Source of the DNA: Amoebophrya sp. A120
Lineage: Eukaryota; Protista; Dinoflagellata
NCBI GenBank assembly: GCA_905178155.1
Contig: CAJINV010000004.1
Location: 2,564,228 to 2,628,227 of the forward strand
Reading direction: 5' to 3'
DNA: 64,000 nt
The translations under genes were made by a program, and so were the position numbers. This document shows, in pieces, positions 47,500 to 63,726 of the stretch; within the stretch, counting starts at the first letter, position 1, and each line of letters starts with the position of its first letter. A model generated the notes under the pieces. The model was given only the letters and a program-made list of their open reading frames with translations. It had not been told where the DNA came from and did not search any database.

Positions 47500-50031
47500 T
47501 TAAATACCACAGTAGTCGTACACGTGACTCCAAGTCAATTCTGCTTGTTCAGTCACTTCCCGTAGCATTGAAAGCGAGTAAGGCTGATACCTTACTGTGG
47601 TAATAGTCGACAGAAGGTAACAGCTAAAAACAGGAACCGCAATCGTATTTATTTGCGGAAATAATTGGAAAGAAGACCCTGCTTGCTCCGTCCCAGAATC
47701 CACAAAAAATAGTCCTACAAATCTCGGCAGCAAGACTTTCGCCTGCTCGTCATCAAATGCTGCAAACTTCCACGTAATAACATACCACTCGACGACGTCG
47801 TTCACGAAGAAAATAATTGACACAACCAGACCGAAAATAATCTCCTCGCTGGTCTGCGGAAACCCGGGGAACAGCGACACGTTATTCGCCAGCGCAACGA
47901 GGGGGACAAAAATCATCGCTAGCGACGTCATTAGGCGGCAGTGCGCACGAATCTGGTACCGTTTAAAATTTTCTTGGCGGTAAAAATCAGTGCAGTGCCT
48001 GAAGGCGTTCAGCTCTGCTGCGGAAACCGGGCTCTTTGCTGTTTTCGTTTTTCCTTTATCTTCTCGGCCAAGTAAAAACTTCAGAAACGTCCGGGTGGTC
48101 GCCACAGGCGGGGGAGCGTCAACAGAAAGGGTCTTATGGACACTGCTGGTCTGGTGCAGGATCGCGTTTTCCGGCTTGGCCGGCATGCTCGCGGCCTTCT
48201 TCACTGGCAACGCAGTTTCTACTCTTGCCGCCAGAACACCCACAGACCTTCCACCGGCTTCTACATCTCTGTTATTTCCGATGCTGCGGCCTGTTCCGGT
48301 TCTGGTTCCGCTCCTTTGCGTGCCGACTTGTACCCCTGCAGCAACTTGATTCGCAGTCAGCCTCCCCCTCCCCGTGCTAATTTCGAGCAGGTTGGGCAAT
48401 GTTGCGTCTCTGTCGCTGGTTTCGGATTCTGTCGTGCTCACATGGTCTTCCGGTTCCATTTCAACTCTCACTGCACCGTGCGAAAGATTCGCGACATCTC
48501 GGTTGAACAAATCCCGGAAGAGGTGTACTGGTACGTTTCTGATTTTAACCCGGATGTTAGAAAAGTGCAGAGCCAATGTTTTCTTCCCGAGTTGGGTGCG
48601 AGTTGTAGTACTCCGATGTAGAACTTCCCTGTACTCCGTTGCAATGCCACTAGTTGTGCCCGAGTTGTAATCCGTCAGCTGATGCCCGCATCCAGCTCCT
48701 GCATCGAAGGCGCCAGTAGTTTCCTCTGCGAGTAGTATCTGCTCAAAGTCAATCTCCTCGTCAAACGCGATGGAAAAACGTCGATTGATAGAACTGATTC
48801 GTTGCAGATGGTAACAAATTTTGGTGGCCCATCGCCATCTCTCCGGAACATGCTCCAGATCGTCAAAGTCGCAAACTTTCAGCGCAAACACCAACAACGC
48901 TTCTTTTTGCCTCAAAGCGAAGTGCCAGATGTGGTAGGTCAGGTCACGAAAGAGTACAAAAGCGATGGCTGCAGGAGATAAAACCAGGAAAACGCCGCGC
49001 CCCATTCCGAACCGAGTGGCGTCGAACATGTACTGGGCGCTGCAAACCATAACTTCCCGGGTTTTTTCCTGGGCCGCTTTCTGCGTTCGTGCGTCGGGGA
49101 AGAGGTCGCACAACTTCCAATCGTTGTCAGTAGGAAGCAGCCGCGGTACAAGCACCTGCCCCCCAATTTTTTCCAGAAGAGGCAGCACAATGCTGAAGAA
49201 GAAACCACACACCAGCGTCTCTGCGATAATGCGCTGGTACCCCGGTAACTCTTGCGCAGTTGCTAGTAGGGCCGGAATGATGCGCGTCGCCGCAAAGAGA
49301 GAAAGACCGAGGTAGAGCAGTCCCCAAAATTGAAATGCAAGGGAGCGGTAGACTGCGCTATAGCATCCCGCACTCCACGATCGCGCCACTGCATACCGGA
49401 AGAAGACCAGCAAAAAAACAGCTAGAAGCGCCTTGATGGGGATGTAGACCAATCGGAACAGGGCAAGACTTTGTACGCGGCCTTCCTCGGTCAGGCACGC
49501 GAAGACGCCGCCATACCAACCTACAACAAACAAAACGGTGTAAATGGTCGCAAACGCTAGTGCTGGCCGGTTCTTTCGCAACGACGTCTTCAACAGTAGC
49601 AAGCTAAGCGGCGACGGAATCTGCAGCACGACATACGCCAAGGCCAAGGCTGTTTCAAGGAAAACCGCGCCGACCACCAACTCGTGAAACGCGGCATAAG
49701 CGAAATTTGTCGGGATAGCAATTGTATTGCCAGCCGCTGTAGCTTTTCCGTCGGAGCTAACTTTCGCTGGATCAAACACACCTGTGCCCATCACAGATGC
49801 TAGCCGCTGAAAATCGCTAAACTCGCAAACCGGACCGACGCCGCGCAAAATGGTGAGGAGCACAATAAACAGGACCGGAATCAGCACCGTACGCACGGTG
49901 ATGGTGAAAAACTTCCTTTTCAATTCCCGAATGCGGTTTTCATCCTTCCTGGTTGGCTTTCTCGTGCTGGAAGCTTTCCGCACAACGGGGGAGTCATCTG
50001 CGATTGAAGTTGATGCGCGGTTCATTGTCAT
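47500..50031 (-). CDS. Multi-pass membrane protein of unknown function, paralog 2
   Basis: 843-aa intronless ORF; both paralogs remain open despite many substitutions and in-frame indels. Confidence 0.85.
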   Translation of the reverse strand: MTMNRASTSIADDSPVVRKASSTRKPTRKDENRIRELKRKFFTITVRTVLIPVLFIVLLTILRGVGPVCEFSDFQRLASVMGTGVFDPAKVSSDGKATAAGNTIAIPTNFAYAAFHELVVGAVFLETALALAYVVLQIPSPLSLLLLKTSLRKNRPALAFATIYTVLFVVGWYGGVFACLTEEGRVQSLALFRLVYIPIKALLAVFLLVFFRYAVARSWSAGCYSAVYRSLAFQFWGLLYLGLSLFAATRIIPALLATAQELPGYQRIIAETLVCGFFFSIVLPLLEKIGGQVLVPRLLPTDNDWKLCDLFPDARTQKAAQEKTREVMVCSAQYMFDATRFGMGRGVFLVLSPAAIAFVLFRDLTYHIWHFALRQKEALLVFALKVCDFDDLEHVPERWRWATKICYHLQRISSINRRFSIAFDEEIDFEQILLAEETTGAFDAGAGCGHQLTDYNSGTTSGIATEYREVLHRSTTTRTQLGKKTLALHFSNIRVKIRNVPVHLFRDLFNRDVANLSHGAVRVEMEPEDHVSTTESETSDRDATLPNLLEISTGRGRLTANQVAAGVQVGTQRSGTRTGTGRSIGNNRDVEAGGRSVGVLAARVETALPVKKAASMPAKPENAILHQTSSVHKTLSVDAPPPVATTRTFLKFLLGREDKGKTKTAKSPVSAAELNAFRHCTDFYRQENFKRYQIRAHCRLMTSLAMIFVPLVALANNVSLFPGFPQTSEEIIFGLVVSIIFFVNDVVEWYVITWKFAAFDDEQAKVLLPRFVGLFFVDSGTEQAGSSFQLFPQINTIAVPVFSCYLLSTITTVRYQPYSLSMLREVTEQAELTWSHVYDYCGI

Positions 50032-51581: not shown

Positions 51582-53736
51582 TTACAACAGAATCCTGTAT
51601 TTCTCTTCCATCGGCACCCGACACGCTGTCACAACGCCGTCGTAGGACAAACTGCAGTAGACCCAGGCGTCGTTCCCTGACCACGCCACCGAATACACCG
51701 CGTCCTCCTGCGAGACCTGCTTCAGGTTTTTCGAAAGGCTGAAATTCTGGTTTTGCTCCTTCTTCGTGCGCCACAGATTCACCTGGCAGTCGCTGCCCGC
51801 AGTGAGAACCAGCTGGTCGTGAAAGGGATTGTGCGCCACAGCGGTTATCCAATGGGAATGCGCACTGGAGGTGTGGTGGACCTGACAGGTTGAAACAAGT
51901 CGAAGTCGATGATCTTTACTTAGTACTATTACTGATTTTGTGCTTCGCTTTTCATTTTGCGGAAGCATACACTTGGACTTGCACCCGAAAATATAAATAA
52001 TCTACCGCACCATGTTCATCAAGTTTAAACTACCAAGCTGCGCTATACAAGAAAACGTATTACTAGATGAGTACACATGCCGTCTGCGTGTTTCTCAAGT
52101 CCCAGATCTTGAACGCCGCGTCCTCTCCTCCCGTCAAGAGCTGATTTGGCACATTCGGATTGAACTGCACCGCCGTCAGGCCGAACGCGTGCGCGTCCCG
52201 GCACTCCATCTTCGCGGCAAAAGACGCTGCGGAAGACCCGCCAGTGCGGAGGTCGCAGATCTTCAGATCGGCATTGAGGCCGACGGCAAACACGTTACTG
52301 TGGTGGGTATCGTAGGCGATCGCGTGCAGGACGCTCCGTTGCTGGTCCTGCTGTGCAGATGATTCCACTGAGGTCGTGGAACCGCTTGCGGTGCTTTTCG
52401 TCAGGGCCTCCTTCCCGATTGTTCTCACCACCGCGTTCCTCTGCGTGTCCACGGCGCAGACCGTTATCCTCTGCAAAAGTATCGTACTTGTATTGCAATC
52501 ATGCCTTACAAATCATTTTATTAATTCACATCCGCATTACAAATTTTATTTCTCATGCTGAGGAAATTTGTAATGCATTTATACGAATACGATACTTTTG
52601 CAGTTCATAACCGTCGCGCCATCGCGACTGGCGACGAGAAGTCGCGAGGACTCGAAAGGGTCCCACTGGCAGTGGTGCCAGGATAAATTGGTGAAACTTG
52701 TTGAGCTGTTAGATGCCGAAGATGGTGCAGAACTTGCAGTTGAAGTTGTTCCTCCACTCGTACCTCTGCAAGAACTACAGGCCGAACACCTCGCAAACAC
52801 CCCGTCCTCCTCGTAGTTGCTCTGGTCTTTTAACTCATTCCCCGGCTTCTTCGAGATCCACACGGCGCCGTCGTCTCGTCTCCACCCCGTGACAAACGCG
52901 GTGGTGTAGGGTTGTTTCGGCGACACCGCGATGGACGCCACGGGGCCGGAGTCTGGTGGGAGGGCAAGGCTTTTGAGCAACAGAAGCTCGTTCTCCTCGT
53001 CCGCGAACTGGAGCACGTGGACTTGGTTTTTCGCACTGTCCGGGAGAAAGCTGCCGGCGAGAAAGTATTACAATGAAAAATGCCCCCTCTCCATATCAAA
53101 ACGGAAATCTGTCATGCAGATTCGTGGTCACAAATCAGCTTTGTGATGCTAGAAGGCAGAAGATGCGGACTGTAGTGCTGTCTAGCGTGGGGAAGCCTTG
53201 CAGCTCCAGGATGACAGGAGGCAACTGGAAGTGGGAAACAGCATGACAGATTACCTGTAACTTAGGCCGCAGCTTCGTCTCTTGGCCTTCTAGCAAGTCG
53301 ATTTGTGTACTCAAATAGAGCATCACAAATTCGCGCACCTTCCGTTTCCGATATGCACTGGGGGCTTTTTTCACTTTGATAGAAAGACGTTCGTGTTCGG
53401 GACGGCCGCGAGGCTGCGGGCCGACGCCTGCGGCATGCGCCAACTCGAGGAGACGGCATTATGGCGTTCTCAACTGTTACATTCTCAACTGTTACATGGG
53501 TTTGTGATGCAAGAATGGCAAAAGTGAAAGGGGTCAGCTTGCGCGTCTTGCATGACAGATCTAGCAAAGATTCTCGGCCTGTTTGGCTCTTCGCGAATTT
53601 GTCATGCGAAGCAGCTTGATCGTGTCGATTCTGATTGTGATTTTGCATTACAAATCATGTAACAGTTGAGAATGTAACATTTGAGAACGCCATAGGCATG
53701 CTCCACGTTGAGCTCGTGGTGATGTCCTTCGGCCAT
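51582..53736 (-). CDS. EIPR1: EARP/GARP-interacting WD40 protein (EIPR1/TSSC1); 3 introners plus canonical intron 51882-52074; 416 aa spliced
   Basis: NQVHVLQF.DEEN, FNPN...LLTGGED..FKIWDLR, HSHW....HNPFHDQLVLT, EDAVYSVAWS..DAW...SLSYDG...RVP...KYRILL. Spliced length 1251 nt. Confidence 0.9.
52465..52609. mobile_element. Introner family A
   Basis: TATCCTCTGCAAAAGTATCG...CGATACTTTTGCAGTTCATA; DR ACCGT. Confidence 0.9.
53066..53381. mobile_element. Introner family F
   Basis: TATTACAATGAAAAATGCCCCC...GGGGGCTTTTTTCACTTTGATA; DR GAAAG. Confidence 0.9.
53460..53694. mobile_element. Introner family D
   Basis: TATGGCGTTCTCAACTGTTACATTCTCAACTGTTACATG...CATGTAACAGTTGAGAATGTAACATTTGAGAACGCCATA; DR GGCAT. 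Confidence 0.92.
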
Positions 53737-54278
53737 CTTAGAGTAGAGGTTAGGGCCGCGGCGCCCTCGTGTTTTTTTTTTTGTACGTCTGTGAAAAACG
53801 TTAGTTAACGCAAAGATAAACTTGCAAAATTCAGGGGGCACCAGCTCGGACGGCACAGTAGTGAGCTACTTTTGTTGAACTTTGATCTGCATACTTAGAC
53901 AGCGATGAAGAGTCAGTTGCTCTTTGGTTCTTCTTCTTTCGTTTTTATCGCATATAAGATGATTGGAAAACGCAACAGGAACAAGGATAGTTCAGAACGT
54001 GCGCGCAAGTTGTCATCTTGATTGCTGGTGATCTTTGAACGCCTAGAACACATGAGATGCGAATCTGATCATTCGTATGTCGTCTATTGATGATGCCGAT
54101 GGGTTGAGTAGTTTTCAGAAGTTTTTCTCCTGACAGCAACCGACGGCTGGGTTGTGGTCTTGCGTTTGTCAACAAGGGACACCGGCTCAAATATCATACA
54201 AGAGTGCGAAGATGACATCGTACATTTCATCATTTGCGTACAATTCTCGGTTTTATCGTACATGATCCATCTTCAAAT

Positions 54279-57200
54279 TCATTCTATATAGCCAAGACGC
54301 GGTCGTGGTCCAACTCCGCCAGTTTCGCCATGGTCCAATAACTGCTGCCGACCCGCTCTCTCGGTGCCGTTCGCCATCAAAACGTTCCGACTGGACATCG
54401 CAACCACGCCATCACCTCCTCTACTACTTCGCGAGGACCCTGCTTGGTGCTCTTGGGCCACTGCCCTACTTCTTCGCCCATTCACTGCGGTCAAGTACGC
54501 CACCAAATCCCCCACCGTCTCGCACCGAACGATGTTTGCCAATCGCACATCACAATCTATGGTGTTCTCAACTGTTACATTCTCAACTGTTACATGGATT
54601 TGTCATGCAAAACCACCTTAAGCCGCCAGATGGTCAAGCTGCTTCGCATGACAAATCTCCGAAGGGCTAGCCAGCATGTAAATCTGTACCAAATCTGTGA
54701 TGCGAAAGCAGCAAGTTTACCCCTTCGATCGTCATGGTTCTTGCATTACAAATTCATGTAACAATTGAGAATGTAACGTTTGAGAACTCCATACAATCCG
54801 GGAAATGGGAGCGAAGAACCCCGGTGAACGCGGTGGTGCCGAAACTGTCGAGCCCCAGCTCGTATGAATTGCAAAAGCATCGCAGCACTTCTAGTAGTGA
54901 TTGCAATACAAACACAAACTGGCTCAGCATTACAAATTGAATTTGTGATGCGGATTTGCCTTAGGAACTAGATTTGTAATGCATAACTGCAATTAGTACG
55001 AGTACGATACTTTTGCACAGGATAGCTCGTCGAGACGAGAAGCACTATCCACGATCGCACCGGTCAGCTGGCGGAGGAGTTCGGCCAGGCGGGTGTGCGT
55101 AGAGTTGGTGTAGTGCTGAAAAACTTCTGTGCGAGGAGGACCCGGTAATACACTTCCTGCGGCTGCCGCCAGAGGGTAGTTGTTCATTTCCACTTGCATT
55201 CTATCGCGTCCACCCAGGCCGATCGCTGCGGACTGATAATTGGTAGTGAACGTACTAACACCAAGTTGTTCTACTTGTCCATCTTGTTCTCCTCCCATAG
55301 GCGCGTAAAGCGACGTGCTTCCCGCAGTCCCTCCCGCCCGCGGACAACAGTCGCCGCCGGTCCCGAGCAAAGACGCCCAGCAGTCGCCGCAACAGTTGCA
55401 CTGGACTTTCATGAACTTGATGCCGATGCTCGCGATGAAGCCGTTGGAAAGCAAAAAGTTCAGGAAAGACGCCGCGAGCATGGTCAAGAGAATCACGATC
55501 AGGGTCTCGCTGTAGGCTTCCACCGGCCAGGGGTGGCCGGCGGCGTTGTGCCACCACCATTCGCGGTTGGTCGTGCCGCGGGTCAGAAACCAGTAGTACC
55601 AAGCGACGTTGTAGTGCAACAGGTACATGGGATAGGCCTGAGTATTTTTCAGGTGGTGTTTTGATGTTCTCAAATATTTTATTCCCAGGAAGTTCAATAA
55701 CGATGTGGAAGAAAAAAGAACCACCGCAGGAAGAATTCCAAGTCGTAGGCGCTCGAGAAAAAACTAAGAGAGACACCAGACAACTAGACAAGCAGATGAA
55801 CAAGATGCGGATCACTTCTACTTACACAAGTTAAGCGCCTTAATACCAGCGGCGCCAAGTATTTTGCAATCACCATGCCGTTCCAGGTTGTCAGCGCTCG
55901 ATAGGTGAGACTTCGGTTCCCGATCCCCGCGAGACCCAGGAACCAGACCAGCAGAAACGGGGTGATCAGCCGACACGTGCCGAACCAAAACTGCGTCTCC
56001 GTGAGCCAGCGCCCGTCCATCCAGGGGCCAATGTCGTGGCGCTTCTGGTCCGCCGAGTCGATCAGATATTGCTCGTAGGAAACATTGTCACGATCATCTT
56101 CGGAATAACAAATCCTGCCGCCCTATCCCGTGTAAAAACGTCCCCACGACCCCAGAGTTGTCATGCAGTTCTGCACGCCAAAAAGCCTTCTCATGCGGAG
56201 CTCTATGAGAAAGAGAAGCGCTCTCTCTTTGTGTTTTGGAATTTGTGATGCTAGAATCAGCATGCTATGCTAGATCTGTGATGCTTCTGAACTAGCTGAA
56301 CAGGATCACACTACGAGGACAAACGTGTCATGCCAAACAACCAAAGGTGGCTGATTTGTCTAGCAGAGTTCCCATCTTGACTCTGGTGTGGGGACGTTTT
56401 TAATCAGAATACGCCCGCTCGTCGCTTTTCGTCTTCCGCGTCCGGTTTTGGCGGCAGCCAGGCACACGTGTCGTTGGCGTTCACATAGAAAGCGAGGAAC
56501 AGGAAAAAGCAAGAGATTGCGTCCGTGAGAAAGGCCCAGAGGACGGAATTCGTGTACCACGGGAACAGACGAATTGCATCTTGACCACTTCTACTACCGC
56601 TGATTGGCGGCCCATGCATGGAGATCACTCCGACGTTCGTTCCTGTTCCGGCTGGCTGATCTTGGGCTGCTGCTGAATTGTTTGTTGCTCTCTCCTCGTC
56701 CATAGAGCCATGATCTGCAGAGAGAGCAATTCGTTGCTCGTCTAAAACTCTGCTTCTGGTCGCACTTCTGCTCATCTGAGGCTCAGAATTTATTTGCATT
56801 TCCTTTTTCTTCCGTGCTTGCACCGCCGGGAGAAACACCGCTTCGTGCAGTTTCCAAGTCAACTATCCAGGAAAAAACACCCATCCCCATCCATTTTTTG
56901 CATGACAAATAGTGGAACTTAGGCACGTTTTGCATGACAAATTGGATGGGGATGGGTGTTTTTTCCTGGATATCAACACCGCGGTGACGAACATCGGGCC
57001 CCAGCTGAAAATCAGAAACGTCGCGATAAACAGGCCTCGGAAGATCAACGGCACCATGACAAACGTCGCAGCAGTATCAAGCAAAATAGTGTTAGCGTTA
57101 ACGGTTTTCACAGATGTTAGTCATGCATTACAAATTTTGCCTTACATGCATGCTACGCAATACAAATTTGGGTGCCTTGTTTTCTGATGCATTACTGCAT

Positions 57201-60200
57201 CACAAATTCCGTTAACGTTAACGCTTTTCACTTTGATAAGCAGCGCCGGTGAGACAGCAGGCGTAGAACGTTTTCGCTTTATCGACCGGCGTTCTACTGC
57301 TGGTCGTCGAAACAGGACGACTTTGTCCCATGGAAAAAAACGCCGGGTGGTAGTGGAACTCGCTTGAGATCACTTCGTCCAAGCAGGGGAAACAGCACAA
57401 GAAACAGTAGTAGTTCGCCTGAAACCAGTATGACAGTGCACAGGTCCCCCTCGTTCTCATTTGTCATGCAAAGTCCACAATCCAGTCGCTTCGCTTCCTT
57501 GGGGCACTGTTTGCATGGCAAATTCCGGCGGAAGCCCAAACAGCACTACAACACTAGGCACACATCAAATTTGTCATGCAGAGGCGCCACGTGTGCTGGT
57601 GTTTGTACTGCTGTTCATGCAAAAATACAAACGAGGGGGACATGCATGGGGGATTGTGCACTCTCATAACCAGGCCACGGGATTGAAGGGTGCGACGAAG
57701 ATGGCGGGCCAAAACCCGGTGAGGAAGATTAACAACTGGATCGGCACCGCATATGCATTGCAAATATGTCTGGGTCTGGTGGGTTGGCACTTGTGATGCT
57801 AAGTTTGGATTCTAAAAAATGAAAATCTGTATTGCGTGACCAGCAAGAGGAGTCCAGTTTGCGCTACGCGGGGAGGTCATTTGTCATGCGGAACAGGCAT
57901 CAGGAAGGCCTCTATAAATCTGTGATGCTAGGTCATGCATTAGCATTACAGACATCCTGGGTCATGCAAAATATGCATGAGAAATCTCGGATTCTTCCAG
58001 ACCCAGACATATTTGCAGTTGATACCGCAATCCAATACACAACCGCATTCTCCGCCTGCTTGCAGTCCCCCGGGGGGCAGCGGATGAAGAAGCTCGGTAA
58101 CGCGAAGATGGTCGAGAGGATGTAGAGACTGTGCGCCAGGCCAATTCGGTTGATGTAGTAATCTCTCCGTTCCCTTTTCTCGATGGGCTTTCGTGCGGAC
58201 CCGCGGGCGGTGAAAAACGCCGCCAGGAAGCTGAAGGCCGACATGTCCATGCTGAGGCTCTGGAGCTTCGCGGTGAACTCGGTTGGCATGCGCCCGACGT
58301 GGAGCTGAATCACCCAGCACGCGAATAGAAACCGAACTGCGCGCAGCGCCGGATAGGAGCCGCCGGTGGAGAGAAGTTGTAGTTTCGGTGGTCCTTGATA
58401 GAGATAGGGGGCTAGAGGATATGATAAAGTTGTTGCAGAAGAAGCCGAGCCGCTCAAAGCATAGGGCGGCGCGTAGAAGTTCTCAACTGGTCGTGGTGCC
58501 AACATATTCTCTCCATTCTGATGAAGAACAGCGTGGGACGACAGCGCGCCTACAACCGGAGTCGCCGTATTGTATGCCACATGGTACGGAGAACTGCTGT
58601 AGTAGACGCTCCCGCTCGACGGCTGCACTTGCACCACGTGCTGCATAATTTGCGGCTGCGCGACCAGCTGCTGCTGTGGAACAACTCCGCCCCTATCAAC
58701 GAGTGGATTCGGCCTCATCCGGTCGAGGTACCGTTCTGGTGGCAGGCCGAGGACGGTCGGTACCGAATTCCAGTGGTACACAAAGTCAAAGTCGTCCCGA
58801 GTTGTACTAGAAGCCATGATTGCTGCTCTCGCTGCCTCCATGATTCCGTGCGTCCGATGCAGAATGCGGTCTCGCGTCGCGCCGTTGGCGTCGGAGACGC
58901 AAAAGGCGAAGGGTTCGGCATTATGCGGCATCCCCGGCGGCGCAGAAGATGATGCACCTACTGCGGAGGTCCTTGTCGTAATATTACTACCCTCTGCAAC
59001 TACCGCACTTGTTGGACTGCGCGGCCTACTACCTGACGGCAAAATCGGGACTGCACGACCTACAACTGGGGCTCCAACCGAGGGCCGGAACGGGGCTGGC
59101 GTTCTCATGGGCAGCCCTGCAACATCTCCTTCGCCTGTTCTTGGCTGGTGCTGTTCAGCAAGTCTCTGTCCGGGAGGCCGGAAGAACATGCGCGGGTACG
59201 CAGATGCCTGTGCAGCACCGAGGCCTACCGCCGCTCGCTCGACGAAATTTTCGTACGCGCGGCCACGAATCATTTTTCCGGTCTTCGTGATCACGGGAAA
59301 AAGGGCCGTTTCGTTCGCCAGGAAAATCACGGCGGCTTTTCGCGGCGCGGCCACCCCACGGTTCACGGTTTGCGCGAGCAGTTTTCCGAGTGTCAGAAGC
59401 AAGTCGTGGAGACGGAGCTCGATTTTCGTCTTCGCAGAAGAAGACTCATTTGCACGACTTCTTGCAGGAGCTTCGTCACCTCCTGCTCCACCCGCGGAAA
59501 TACTTTCCACGCTGCACTCGTTCAATAACAAGCTGCTCATTGCTTCTGTAGGCAAAACGAAGCACAGTCCGAGCTCCTCGCCGTAGACCACACTCGGCGT
59601 CGCAAAGGCCAGAGCGCGAAACTGTTTTCGGTACTTCACGAGACAGCGCTTGGCAGTAGTGAGGACGACGTTTGAGTAGTCTAAGGGAGCTGTTACACGA
59701 CCTTCTGCTGCGCTTTGTAAGGCTCCTCCTGGGCGGTCAAGTGGTGCCATCAACTCGTGGTCGACTAAAGCCACCGCTTGGTCCGCCCGCTTTTCCGCGT
59801 CAAACAAGTTCACCTGTTCGCCACCTCGTTTCAGCACGTCTCGGATCCGCCTATCAAATGCCAAAGTAACGCACTCGTACCAATTGCGTTTATGCATTAC
59901 AAATCTTTATTTTGCTAAGGCAAATCCGCATTTACAAATTGGATTTGTAATGCTAAGTCAATTTGTAATGCAATTCATACTAGTACAAGTACGATGCTTT
60001 TGCAATTCATACCGCCCGCGCAGGTGCAAATTTCCTTCCGCATCGAGTTTGCCCAGGTCGCCGGTACGGAACCAATCGTCCTGGCCTGCACTAGCAACCA
60101 CCCGGGGCCCCCTGACGCAAATTTCCCCGACTTTCCCGACGGGAAGATCCACGAGGGGAAAGGGGGTGGAAGTAACGACACTGGCATCGGTCAACGTTAA

Positions 60201-62748
60201 GACCACTGGCTCCTCCTCCGGATCGTTCTGTTCGTTGTTCACAGAGAATGAACCAGCAGTAGATTCGACGCTTTTATCAACTGCGGCGATGATTTTCAAT
60301 TCCATGCCGGGCAGGACTTTTCCGACAGATTCCAATTGTGCGGGGTTGGGATTTTTGTCCTCATTGATTATTGCATCTTGGCCTTGTACTTGATGTTGAA
60401 GATGTTGGCCAGCTTGTTGATCTCCTCCTTCTGGCTCCATTGATGTTCTTGCCTTCAACATGGTTCTCCATTCTCCTACCGCCGGCGAGCAGATCGGCAT
60501 GGCCTCCGTCATTCCATAGGTTGAGAAAACCGGAACGCGTAGCAACCTCCGCAGGGCCTGGATCTGCTTGAAGTGAAGCCGCGCAGACGCCGACCGGACG
60601 AAGCGAAGATTGTGACGGCCTTGCAAAATTTGCTGCACGACAGAGACATCTTCAGAGGGGTTTTTTGTCATGCTAAAAACTCCGTTCTTTATCGCTTGCG
60701 CACCAGCTACTTCTTCTTGTTCCAGCGTCAGGAGGATTTGGCGGTGCATGGTTGGGACGGCGTAGTACCAGGTGATGCCCCGTTCCACGACAGCGTGAAG
60801 AAAGTCGTGACAGTTGAACTTCGACAGGAGACCCACTCGTCTATCAAATGCAAATATGTCTGGCTCTGGGTCTGGAAACCTGTAATGCTTATATGGTCAT
60901 GAGTGAGTGCGCCTCTAAGTGCAGTATTGCATGACAAATTTTTCAAACGCTTTCTCATAGTCATAGTGCTTAGTGCGCACGACAAACAAACTGCGCTTTT
61001 TCATACCGAAACTGTGGCGCTTTTGTTGCTTTTACGCAATACAGATTTTTTTGTAGTCCTGGGCACGCAATACAAGTTCAACCTTTCCAGACGCTGACAT
61101 ATTTGCATTTCATATCGCCCCCCGGACTCCAAAACCGCGAGGAGGTTGCAGGCAATGCCGCCAATGTGGAACAGGGGCAACGCGTTTAAGCACCGATCGC
61201 TTGTGCGCAGGTCCAAAGAGTCCGCAATCGCTTTTGCCGACAGTCGCAGCTGGGGGGCTGAATACGTGACCAGTTTTGGTTCCCCCGTGGTGGTGCCCGA
61301 TGTGGGGAGGAGGAGGACTGGAGGCTGAGTACTAGTTGCAACACGGTCTGTCTGCTCGTTTTTCTTGTCGGCGCTGAGAGTCTTTGATGTCCAGGTAGGA
61401 AATGGCGGCACCGGTCGTGTTCGTTTGTAGTTTTTGTTTTGCACGACGCAGTCCACGTAAAGAGAAAACTCTTCTTCTTTAATATTCCCCGCAGTTGTTC
61501 CGCTTCCGTCTACTCCTTCCCCATATCTTCTTCGTGCGCTCTCGTCTACCTGTGCATCAATCTTCGTAGTAGAGGCACGCGGGAGTCCGAGGGAGAAATT
61601 CGCGGCGAGCATCGGTAGATCGATGTGCGCACCATCTTCGCTTGTTGTGCTTCGTTGCGTCGAGGCCAAATGGAGTTGCTTCACCACATCTCGGATTCCC
61701 ACTATGCAGTGGCAGCGGAACACGCTGTTGGCTTGGTGCATCACGTCCGGCAGGGGGCCACGGGCGTCGATCGGACAGGCGATGAAATGAACGCGTCTGT
61801 ATGTAGTTGCTGGGGATCTTTTCGGAGTAGATTTTTGTCCTTCTGTGATCATGTCCTCGTGCAGCTCAACCGACGAAGCACGCTTGCTGGTGTCCTCGTC
61901 CATCTTTGCTGTGCCCGTTTCGCTTATCGTCTTTAATAGTGCAGGCTGGTAAAACAACGAGAGGAGCAAAAGTACCTCCTGGACCGCAATTGAAAGGCTG
62001 TTTTGCGGAGAAGAGCTTGTTTCTTTTTGCAGATGTTCGTTTTCCTCCGCAACAAGATTCGGTTCTTTGGCTTCTCCGCCGATCAGGACGCCGATGCGGA
62101 TAACGAGGACACGATGATCGTCATCTTCTTCATCATCTATGACAGTGCACAACTACTCCCCCTCCCCCTCATCTGTATAGCATGAACGGCAATACAAGCA
62201 TCAGCAAGAATGCCGGTTTTGCATGACAGATTTGCACTGGAGTATAGTCCTACTTGGGCTACCAGAACTTGTCATGCACACAGAGCCAAGAGGCAAAGGG
62301 TGGATTGGGTATTTGACATGACAAACGAGGGGGAGGGGGGGTTATGCACTGTCATATCATCCTTGTTCCGACCGCTGGGCGAAGGAGACTTTGCAGGAGC
62401 TTTATCCGCGACATCTCTTTCAGCACCGGACAAGCCCACCTGCTCCGCAGCCTCGGCACCAGCATCTCGAGACGCCGTTTTTCCTCCGAGGAACAAGAAG
62501 TCCTCGTGTAGTGTCTGACCGCGCAAGGCATCAGAAACTGCTTCGGCGAGAGCGTTTCTGTGGAGAAACTCCGCGAGAACAGGGTAGCTGACATTGCACG
62601 TTGGGTCGTTTGAGTCCTGCAGAGCAACGTGGTGCGGATCTCGCAGTGCGACGGATAGAGCATTTTTCTCCTGTTGTACCAGTCCACCTGCAAGCGGTGC
62701 TCCGGCCAGCCGCAGTGGGCTCTCGTCTTGTGTGGTGGAGGGAGGCAT
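54279..62748 (-). CDS. ~2028-aa fusion: acyl-AMP/CoA ligase (Pcs60/AAE3-like) + acyltransferase-3 multi-TM domain + C-terminal phosphopantetheine carrier domain; 10 introners plus canonical intron 55638-55846
   Basis: Ligase: PTSGTTTGEPK, LPLFHIGG, WYYAVPTM, YGMTEA, GEICVRGP, WFRTGDLG, GRIRDVLKRGGE, TKTGK. AT3: LRAVRFLFACWVIQLH, YYINRI, NPVAWFQANYYCFLCCFP, LAYPMYLLH. Carrier: LDELGLDSFG..TVGDLVAYL. Spliced length 6087 nt, open frame. Confidence 0.8.
54558..54793. mobile_element. Introner family D (reverse orientation)
   Basis: TATGGTGTTCTCAACTG...GTTTGAGAACTCCATA; DR CAATC. Confidence 0.9.
54863..55024. mobile_element. Introner family A (reverse orientation)
   Basis: TATGAATTGCAAAAGCATCG...CGATACTTTTGCACAGGATA; DR GCTCG; splits LDEL-GLDS. 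Confidence 0.9.
56124..56411. mobile_element. Introner family G (single copy)
   Basis: TATCCCGTGTAAAAACGTCCCCAC...GTGGGGACGTTTTTAATCAGAATA; DR CGCCC. Confidence 0.88.
56864..56972. mobile_element. Introner family H: minimal 109-bp element
   Basis: Perfect 30-bp TIR TATCCAGGAAAAAACACCCATCCCCATCCA; DR TCAAC. Confidence 0.92.
57075..57238. mobile_element. Introner family I (single copy)
   Basis: TATCAAGCAAAATAGTGTTAGCGTTAACGG...CCGTTAACGTTAACGCTTTTCACTTTGATA; DR AGCAG. Confidence 0.88.
57429..57668. mobile_element. Introner family B
   Basis: TATGACAGTGCACA...TGTGCACTCTCATA; DR ACCAG; opposite orientation to 32989. Confidence 0.9.
57752..58024. mobile_element. Introner family C
   Basis: TATGCATTGCAAATATGTCTGGG...CCCAGACATATTTGCAGTTGATA; DR CCGCA. 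Confidence 0.9.
59852..60011. mobile_element. Introner family A body with a C-type left tip
   Basis: TATCAAATGCCAAAGTAACG...CGATGCTTTTGCAATTCATA; DR CCGCC; splits LRGR-IRD. Confidence 0.9.
60842..61114. mobile_element. Introner family C
   Basis: TATCAAATGCAAATATGTC...GACATATTTGCATTTCATA; DR TCGTC/TCGCC. Confidence 0.9.
62138..62356. mobile_element. Introner family B
   Basis: TATGACAGTGCACAAC...GTTATGCACTGTCATA; DR TCATC; close relative of 19453 and 39953. Confidence 0.9.
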
Positions 62749-63726
62749 GGTCTTCAGCTGGATTTGCAGCGTTCGACGGCAGCACCACTACAACCAAGGC
62801 AGTTCAGCGAATGGCTAGGTGTGGTCCTTACAAGTGGGCGTGTGCGCCATCTTGCTCTTGCACTTGCTATCGCCGGTAACATCTAAATTGTCTAAGGGAT
62901 AGGGATACAGATGAACATTATTTTTACGATGGTTCAATCTCAATCAACAACACGAGGACGCGGCCTTGTGCTCCCACTGACGTTGTGCGAGGTCGTTTGC
63001 CGGTGCCGGGTCCAGCGATATCAGAACTCGTGAGGCAAGTACGAATAGAAGCAGTGCCATAATTCACGAAGGCATGGGTCAACATGTAGTGTGAAAATGT
63101 TACATGAGGTCCTGAAGGAGCCAGCGCCAGCAGAACGAAGCAGACTTTAAGTGCAAGCGACAAGTGAAACGAAAGAATGATGTGCACCACAAAAATTAAA
63201 TGTTGACATTGACATTTGATGCCTCGTTTGGGTATGTTGAAAGTCTCTCTTGACTCCTGCTCCAGAGTCAGACCTAATCCGAAACATCCGACGCACCAGA
63301 CACTATCAAGCGCCATCAGAATCTTCAATACGAACATCGATGCGAAGATCAAGAACACGATGATGTTGATGTGTTTCGCCTTGGATTAAATTCTGCGTTT
63401 GCAGCGACGTCCTCGCCATGGTCAGGTATACACCAGAAAAAGATAAAAACTCATTAAATTATATCCACGACGACTACGTGGACGTACCGTTCTCGTCCAT
63501 CATCGATTTGGATTTTCTTTTCCATACACAAGCGCACAGTTTCTGCATGATACATTCATTATTCGTTGGCCATTCGTCGTGTGTTTCATTTTCATTGATG
63601 CAGAACATGGGAGGTCGAAAAACCCTCCTTTCATGAGGTCAAGAACCATCAATCAATCCACGAGCAGCGCAACAGGACAACTTGCAAGAAGTAGCCGAGT
63701 GCATCAAGTCCACCATAGCTTACAAC

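Follow-up and report, generated by a model that had tools for sequence, protein, structure and literature searches.

The subject of this study is a gene on the minus strand of a 64,000-nt stretch of DNA from Amoebophrya sp. A120 (contig CAJINV010000004.1, positions 2,564,228 to 2,628,227; the whole stretch is called the window here, and coordinates count from its first letter). Its coding span (54279..62748) encodes a 2028-aa protein in which an adenylating ligase is followed by a membrane domain that homology and modelling assign to the acyltransferase-3 (AT3) type, and then by a terminal phosphopantetheinyl carrier domain. It is one expressed nuclear gene, already present in the public annotation. 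The encoded protein is a greatly enlarged member of a widespread, uncharacterised family, which looks like a carrier-fed variant of AT3 transmembrane acylation.

Gene model, transcript and introns

The coding sequence is divided among 12 exons, which join to exactly 6087 nt (2028 codons plus the stop) with 0 internal stops. The spliced translation is identical, residue for residue, to CAD7944812.1 (GSA120T00000252001.1; referred to below as P0001), deposited as 'unnamed protein product [Amoebophrya sp. A120]', and a HMMER search with exon 4 retrieved the same 2028-aa protein at 100% identity, with the query corresponding to its residues 746-1352. The initial annotation of the locus had predicted ten introners, one GT-AG intron, a 6087-nt frame and a product of about 2028 aa. 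This was exact, since the exon model coincides with CAD7944812.1; the gene was not 'hidden', as had been thought, because that same model was already public.

All exons lie on the minus strand. Exon 1 (62357..62748; aa 1-131) holds the start codon and a divergent N-terminal part of the adenylation domain. The domain continues, with low-complexity insertions, in exon 2 (61116..62132; aa 131-470; Pfam AMP-binding E 3.6e-9 on this piece), which includes the P-loop TSGTTTGEPK (61303-61274), and in exon 3 (60012..60837; aa 470-745; Pfam AMP-binding E 2.3e-13), which carries WYYAVPT, LRFVRSASA, YGMTE and TGD. Exon 4 (58024..59846; aa 746-1353) runs from the C-terminal subdomain of the ligase, with KRGGE and the A10 lysine K936 (59276-59274), through a linker of ~300 aa to AT3 helices 1-3. 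Exon 5 (57668..57745; 78 nt) owes its length to assembled contigs and its position to identity with P0001 and to the direct repeats GCGGT and CTGGTT; it is followed by exon 6 (57239..57422; 184 nt) and exon 7 (56973..57069; 97 nt). A low-complexity insertion of ~95 aa, in a predicted cytosolic loop, occupies part of exon 8 (56412..56858; 447 nt), and an acidic, Cys-bearing outer loop and helix 8 are encoded in exon 9 (55846..56118; 273 nt). Exon 10 (55024..55636; 613 nt) supplies the YLLH helix and the last helix, followed by a linker and helix 1 of the carrier. Exon 11 (54793..54856; 64 nt) bears the GLDS motif of the carrier, and exon 12 (54279..54551; 273 nt) completes this domain and adds a low-complexity tail before the stop codon.

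In a listing of open reading frames (ORFs) the locus appears as a chain of fragments, two of which score as AMP-binding. In a 654-aa ORF (59897-57933) the end of the ligase is continued by a hydrophobic stretch that scores weakly as AT3. The junction of ligase and membrane domain therefore lies inside one uninterrupted ORF and one 1823-nt exon, and requires no splicing. Read mapping covered 54150-60149 (6000 letters); introns 1 and 2, which are outside this interval, were placed from repeats, frame and the public model. The contigs of four runs, X1-X4, labelled 'RNA?' by the mapping tool as a guess, skip the gaps between the ORF fragments. Run X5 carries the gaps. Its depth is ~25 where the sequence is unique and rises to ~1e5 in the gap elements, which indicates that X5 is DNA and that these elements are highly repeated. 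A 5805-nt contig of X4 extends from 54157, in the 3′ untranslated region (UTR), across the carrier and the membrane domain as far as the ligase; it passes 1693 nt beyond the mapped interval and ends ~12 nt short of intron 1. X1 spans the same region in two contigs, broken at intron 8. In the X1 and X4 contigs the joints of six of the nine mapped introns could be read directly, and the other three were fixed by the lengths of short exons (78 and 97 nt). Of the words sampled from 54200-62900, a fraction of 0.72 occurs in runs X1-X3, equal to the proportion of that interval that is exonic.

The proposal of a single gene in a single frame is borne out by these contigs. We consider it hardly credible that the model wrongly merges two or more genes. 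Assembled contigs are not proof of a single RNA molecule, the X1 assembly breaks at intron 8, some fragments retain introns, and the RNA status of X1-X4 is guessed. Against a merger, the ligase and membrane domains meet within one exon, a single X4 contig reaches from the 3′ UTR into the ligase, the frame is open through all joints, and relatives without these introns keep the colinear order. The raw RNA run X8 gave 0 reads on the 6 kb that was mapped, and counts as no test. X8-X10 are 2026 RNA-seq runs with the same species label, of which X8 alone was mapped; the gene is well covered in the 2020 runs. The zero reads of X8 could mean another strain or stage, or very low expression.

Eleven introns interrupt the gene, ten of them non-GT-AG introners and one a GT-AG intron. 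Repeat analysis found the gaps between ORF fragments to be flanked by inverted repeats; the terminal inverted repeats of the introners match at 19-30 of 30 positions (n=10), and the direct repeats at their borders measure 5-7 nt in nine introners and ~3 nt in the tenth, intron 2. Introners described from Amoebophrya have non-GT-AG ends, terminal inverted repeats of 8-20 nt and direct repeats of 3-5 nt, and are repeated in the genome (Farhat et al., 2021; PMC7789003). Ten of the 11 introns are such published Amoebophrya introner elements. Nonconventional introns of the euglenid kind, with CAG..CTG end pairing, had also been considered; they were dropped, since the protein is that of Amoebophrya sp. 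A120, whose introners are published.

Six introners pair by end sequence. Intron 1 (62133..62356; 224 nt; ends TATGACAGTGCA.. and ..TGCACTGTCATA; direct repeat GATGA) shares an end family with intron 5 (57423-57667), intron 2 (60838-61115) pairs with intron 4 (57746-58023), and intron 3 (59847-60011) with intron 10 (54857-55023). The other introners are intron 6 (57070-57238), intron 7 (56859-56972), intron 8 (56119-56411; 293 nt) and intron 11 (54552..54792; 241 nt; inverted repeat 26/30), a near-copy of which lies just downstream of the gene at 53460-53694. Short pieces of X1 and X4 contain intron 8 sequence (56094-56297 and 56145-56260), which suggests that this introner is partly retained or slowly removed. 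The sole conventional intron, intron 9 (55637..55845), reads GT..AG when the joint is slid by 2 nt (55847-55639), or CT..AC on the plus strand; an inverted repeat was looked for in intron 9 and none was found.

Ligase, carrier and membrane domains

On P0001 the Pfam AMP-binding profile (PF00501; cut-off 29.9 bits) scores 98.5 bits (E 4.6e-28), and separate exon pieces also pass; profile positions 1-144 have no match. The ligase motifs are TSGTTTGEPK (residues 408-417), WYYAVPT (493-499), LRFVRSASA (547-555), YGMTE (577-581), TGD (728-730), GRIRDVLKRGGE (744-755) and TKTGK (932-936). The A3 P-loop, A5 YGxTE, A7 TGD, A8 GRxxDxxKxxG (here GRIRDVLKRGGE) and the A10 lysine are all intact and fall in conserved columns of the family. 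Every ligase motif named in the initial annotation is present, as is the GLDS motif of the carrier with its serine codon at 54844-54846.

The top matches among solved structures, for the sequence of P0001 and for a family profile, are oxalyl-CoA (coenzyme A) synthetases (6qjz, 5ie0-3, 8aff). With the profile these reach E 2e-115, malonyl-CoA synthetase being next at 7e-62, and with P0001 alone the values are 4e-22 vs. 1e-13. Foldseek, run with the whole 1072-aa model of the eukaryotic relative P0008, likewise put oxalyl-CoA synthetases at the top and returned ligase matches only. By sequence, the ligase belongs to the oxalyl-CoA-synthetase clade (AAE3/LsOCS/Pcs60), its best match in sequence and structure and one with which it shares the motifs WY.AVPT and LRF.RS.SA. 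The resemblance to Pcs60/AAE3 noted earlier thus holds at the level of the closest clade, but not in the oxalate pocket. Among the pocket residues listed for AtAAE3 are Ser289 and His319, which contact oxalate and are specific to the subfamily, and His216 (PMC8905533). Ser289 is retained as S554, a position that is Ala in half of the family; His216 is replaced by Gly455 and His319 by Pro584, with the same replacements in 42 of 43 members of the fusion family. Since two residues of the pocket are replaced, oxalate is not established as the substrate.

A single other locus in the genome is similar to the ligase (L024:4800-8900, corresponding to G000:C1:3707799-3711899 on the plus strand; 37% identity). 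It consists of one 1367-aa ORF with AMP-binding, AMP-binding_C and hexapeptide-repeat (left-handed beta-helix) acyltransferase repeats, and is a second, soluble 'ligase fused to acyltransferase' gene, in which no carrier was detected.

The carrier (PP-binding) domain occupies aa 1890-1965 (54471..55106) and is split by introns 10 and 11. PF00550 matches residues 1895-1958 of P0001 with 27.6 bits against a cut-off of 20.8; exon-by-exon Pfam scans gave no carrier match, because the two introns cut the domain. GLDS stands at residues 1918-1921 in exon 11, and the attachment serine S1921 (codon 54846-54844) is shared by every one of the 39 sequences that extend over its column. In the model of another relative, P0027, the carrier superposes on peptidyl and acyl carrier protein (PCP and ACP) folds with Z of 9-10.9 and root-mean-square deviations of 1.7-2.0 over ~70 residues, and Foldseek relates it to AcpM and ACP with a probability of 0.99-1.00. 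The Amoebophrya genome has a gene for a phosphopantetheinyl transferase (PF01648, 36.9 bits).

The AT3/TmAT-type membrane domain spans aa 1241-1790 (55404..58361; exons 4-10), with ten predicted crossings and two large insertions that fall in predicted cytosolic loops. Its assignment to AT3 is based on colinear homology, a sequence motif, language-model features and a fold match, the last of these being supportive only. P0001 aligns with P0008 (1072 aa) in five colinear BLAST blocks that make up the ligase, the N- and C-terminal halves of AT3 and the carrier; in the AT3 part, residues 1245-1397 and 1576-1783 align with 558-714 and 778-957 of P0008. Relatives exceed the AT3 cut-off (overall 31.5-62 bits), among them P0008 (37.2), P0037 (47.1), P0030 and P0045, and bacterial members score 44-62. 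R1250-X10-H1261 (58299..58334), read from the sequence, corresponds with exact spacing to the R/K-X10-H of helix 1 that is common to all studied AT3 enzymes, and R-X10-H is needed for acyl transfer by OafA (PMC7448272). Both columns are invariant in 43 sequences. When language-model features of residues 1235-1800 were compared with the Atlas, the 30 nearest named clusters were all PF01757 (top score 0.95). Finally, residues 18-447 of the AlphaFold model of P0027 (pLDDT 79, pTM 0.84) had HGSNAT as their best two matches in the whole PDB (Z 13.0 and 11.1 over 306 residues; VIA-align). The match covers the ten-helix core of HGSNAT, which shares the 10-helix TmAT fold with AT3 (PMC12423673). AT3 structures were not among the fold matches of the P0027 model, and a Foldseek search of the PDB with a 572-aa model returned nothing at E <= 0.001. 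Pfam scans of the exon pieces and of P0001 turned up no match to MBOAT (PF03062), and models for the fusion or for its AT3 part are absent from NCBIfam.

Hydropathy and the distribution of Lys and Arg across the family predict ten crossings with both ends inside, a count that agrees with the even, ten-helix TmAT core. Positively charged loops share the side of ligase and carrier, and acidic loops lie opposite; one of these outer loops contains two conserved cysteines (C1604, C1625) and a GRW motif. Hydropathy, charge and fold thus agree in predicting that ligase and carrier face the same, cytosolic side of the membrane, as a one-gene acylation system of the kind first proposed would have it. 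The C-terminus of HGSNAT lines the cytosolic entrance of the acetyl-CoA (acyl-CoA) site (PMC11357348), and a carrier placed after the last helix would accordingly sit at the mouth of the pore, where the fold predicts it. The position of the carrier behind the membrane domain, described in the initial annotation as unusual, is on this ground to be expected, and it is also the rule from Pseudomonas to diatoms.

Family members and bacterial neighbourhoods

The order ligase, AMP-binding_C, AT3, carrier recurs throughout a family of well over 100 database members. Eukaryotic members come from the diatoms Seminavis, Nitzschia, Pseudictyota and Thalassiosira, from the core dinoflagellate Prorocentrum cordatum and from marine transcriptomes. 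The proteobacterial members include those of Pseudomonas chlororaphis, Burkholderia, Acinetobacter, Marinibactrum and Methylobacterium. The bacterial homologues are ~1430 aa long, annotated as 'AMP-binding protein' and homologous over 92-96% of P0008; at the N-terminus they carry an additional domain, an FSH1 serine hydrolase, and they are without the insertions of the Amoebophrya protein. A search of the open-access literature found no paper that describes a fusion of ligase, AT3 and carrier.

In a FastTree phylogeny the bacteria form one clade, and the Amoebophrya protein pairs, on long branches on the eukaryotic side, with P0002 (NCBI; 1736 aa), to which it is 31-39% identical and with which it shares the catalytic motifs. 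Two proteins from eukaryote transcriptome collections, P0121 and P0123, group beside the bacterial clade and not with the other eukaryotes, and P0123 has the FSH1 domain in bacterial style; these could represent contamination or a separate acquisition.

The Amoebophrya protein is almost twice the usual length of the family, with low-complexity inserts in the ligase, the linker and the loops. This length, the long branch and the unmatched start of the AMP-binding profile would fit a relic in decay or without catalytic function, which is expressed but disabled by its insertions. We regard such a fate as highly improbable, given that every catalytic motif is intact and shared with P0002, that the insertions lie in loops and linkers, and that the frame is open over its 6087 nt. 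Moreover, generally fast protein evolution has been reported for Amoebophrya genomes (Farhat et al., 2021; PMC7789003).

The neighbours of the bacterial genes were compared at 16 loci. An AraC regulator was found at 14 of these, a PEBP-family gene at 13, DJ-1/PfpI at eight, an Sfp-type phosphopantetheinyl transferase at six and a porin at three. The bacterial loci (L025-L046) display a conserved set of PEBP, fusion gene, AraC, DJ-1/PfpI and Sfp-type transferase, sometimes with the porin. We know of no characterised operon in which PEBP, AraC, DJ-1 and the transferase are combined. In Aeromonas popoffii (L044:8001-12309) the fusion gene is present as two ORFs (733 and 710 aa), which could reflect a frameshift, a sequencing error or a broken copy. 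The phosphopantetheinyl transferase next to these genes argues that the carrier is in use.

Glycan-synthesis genes were not among the conserved neighbours at the 16 loci, and the surface glycan envisaged as acceptor in the initial annotation is at most a candidate. The same neighbourhoods could be taken to favour a function in which nothing crosses the membrane. The membrane domain would then be an anchor, or would act on a lipid within the membrane, as has been suggested for eukaryotic AT3 proteins of the NRF-6 type, and the ligase and carrier would acylate a membrane or cytosolic acceptor. That PEBP, AraC and DJ-1/PfpI are the conserved neighbours agrees with this, as does the fact that little is known of what AT3 proteins do in eukaryotes. 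We nevertheless find this explanation distinctly unlikely, in view of the invariance of the R-X10-H pair that OafA requires, and of the conserved Cys, GRW and acidic residues in the outer loops, which suggest a functional extracytosolic face.

Proposed carrier-fed acylation and its alternatives

The interpretation that we favour, transmembrane acylation fed by the carrier, draws on domain order, conservation, predicted topology and the neighbouring transferase. The cytosolic, N-terminal ANL-type ligase, whose closest relatives act on oxalate and whose own pocket is altered, would adenylate a small carboxylic acid. The same enzyme would next join the acid, as a thioester, to the phosphopantetheine arm of the carrier at the C-terminus and not to free CoA. 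Carried on the last of ten predicted helices at the cytosolic mouth of the pore, the carrier could insert its arm, chemically the same as that of CoA, into the AT3 pore, and the conserved Arg/His pair would hand the acyl group to an acceptor on the lumenal or extracellular side. We lean, by a little, toward this sequence of events, in which the ligase loads the carrier, the carrier arm enters the pore in place of acyl-CoA and the Arg/His pair passes the acyl group outward. The broader proposition, that an AT3/TmAT pore takes a protein-tethered phosphopantetheine arm, so that one polypeptide is a complete, CoA-independent machine for moving a small, unusual (di)carboxylic acid across a membrane, falls just short of even odds in our estimation.

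Known AT3/TmAT enzymes (OafA/OafB, OatA, OpgC, ExoH; HGSNAT) resemble the Amoebophrya protein in the ten-helix domain predicted for it, in the R/K-X10-H of helix 1 and in a presumed cytosolic pore entrance, and the passage of an acyl group across the membrane is presumably their shared task. A fusion of AT3 with a cytoplasmic C-terminal domain is also known, in VanT (PMC12423673). In contrast to the Amoebophrya protein, known AT3 enzymes use acyl-CoA as donor, and many have a periplasmic SGNH domain fused behind an 11th helix. The Amoebophrya protein is without both helix 11 and SGNH; its ligase and carrier stand at either end of the membrane domain, on what is predicted to be the cytosolic face, and its subfamily is weak against the Pfam AT3 model.

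The logic is also that of the DltA/DltC/DltB/DltD system, in which an adenylating enzyme, a phosphopantetheinyl carrier and a polytopic membrane acyltransferase act in turn to bring an acyl group to the outer face. However, DltB is an MBOAT protein of unrelated fold, the Dlt parts are separate proteins, and a D-alanine ligase stands in the place of a ligase of the oxalyl-CoA-synthetase clade. The Dlt system is thus to be seen as an analogue, and not as a member of the family. A further parallel is Aas, an acyl-ACP synthetase fused to a 2-acyl-glycerophosphoethanolamine (2-acyl-GPE) acyltransferase. Aas, too, combines an ANL ligase and an acyltransferase in one membrane-associated polypeptide and works via acyl carrier protein, but its acyltransferase is of PlsC type, its ACP is separate, its substrate is a long-chain fatty acid, and it performs no transmembrane transfer.

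Several points weigh against carrier-fed acylation. The first concern the membrane domain itself. Scored with PF01757 (gathering score 31 bits), the Amoebophrya protein remains below threshold, its best value being 18.8 bits (E 9e-4) on one exon piece (58026-58361); full-length P0001 had no match at E <= 0.01, and the locus was absent from the results of scanning the genome in six frames with PF01757 and PF00550. Of the three Pfam domains that the initial annotation expected on the spliced protein, AMP-binding and PP-binding were therefore recovered and AT3 was not; its AT3 region finds support in the relatives, the R-X10-H motif and the fold match instead. The structure models are those of the relatives P0008 and P0027, not of the Amoebophrya protein, and a Z of 13 is about background for helical bundles. 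The count of ten crossings holds only if one hydrophobic helix (P0008 665-681) does not cross the bilayer. The Amoebophrya copy has very large insertions and lies on a long branch. As for the chemistry, the literature gave no biochemical data for any member of the family. The donor of AT3 enzymes is held to be acyl-CoA and not a carrier protein, ACP having been set aside (PMC9558356), and the ligase, standing in a clade of CoA ligases, might simply make acyl-CoA.

This last point leads to an alternative in which the ligase makes free acyl-CoA beside the pore, AT3 uses the CoA thioester, and the carrier is an acyl buffer, an alternative acceptor or a docking module. The nearest relatives of the ligase are true CoA ligases (oxalyl-CoA synthetases), and the AT3 enzymes that have been tested use acyl-CoA (PMC9558356). 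On the other hand, almost all full-length members retain the carrier and its serine, the bacterial genes repeatedly have a dedicated phosphopantetheinyl transferase next to them, and the carrier is tethered at the predicted cytosolic mouth of the pore. Selection on carrier, transferase and tethering would be hard to explain if the carrier were dispensable, and we judge this alternative to be unlikely. In carrier-fed acylation, the product of the ligase is probably a thioester of the carrier and not of CoA, unlike that of AAE3.

AT3/TmAT enzymes decorate surface and lumenal sugars in all domains of life, with effects that extend from O-antigen serotypes and lysozyme resistance to the lysosomal breakdown of heparan sulfate, and access of the acyl donor to the AT3 pore has so far been modelled for acyl-CoA only. 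The fusion puts an acid activator at one end of the pore protein and a carrier at the other, both ends being predicted to be cytosolic, and thereby makes carrier-fed transmembrane acylation a testable prediction. If true, a CoA-independent, carrier-fed AT3 would overturn the assumption that the donors are always acyl-CoA. The interest lies more in this family-wide hypothesis than in the single locus, and it would best be tested in bacteria, where the Pseudomonas and Acinetobacter homologues are experimentally tractable. For Amoebophrya, a parasite whose biochemistry is almost unknown, the protein is a candidate enzyme for the modification of a surface or a compartment. With regard to annotation, the label 'ligase' on hundreds of database proteins conceals a membrane acyltransferase.

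Two further features lie downstream of the gene. WD-repeat-like ORF pieces occur at 51582-53016 of the window, and an uninterrupted 843-aa ORF with many hydrophobic stretches is located at 47500-50031 on the minus strand.

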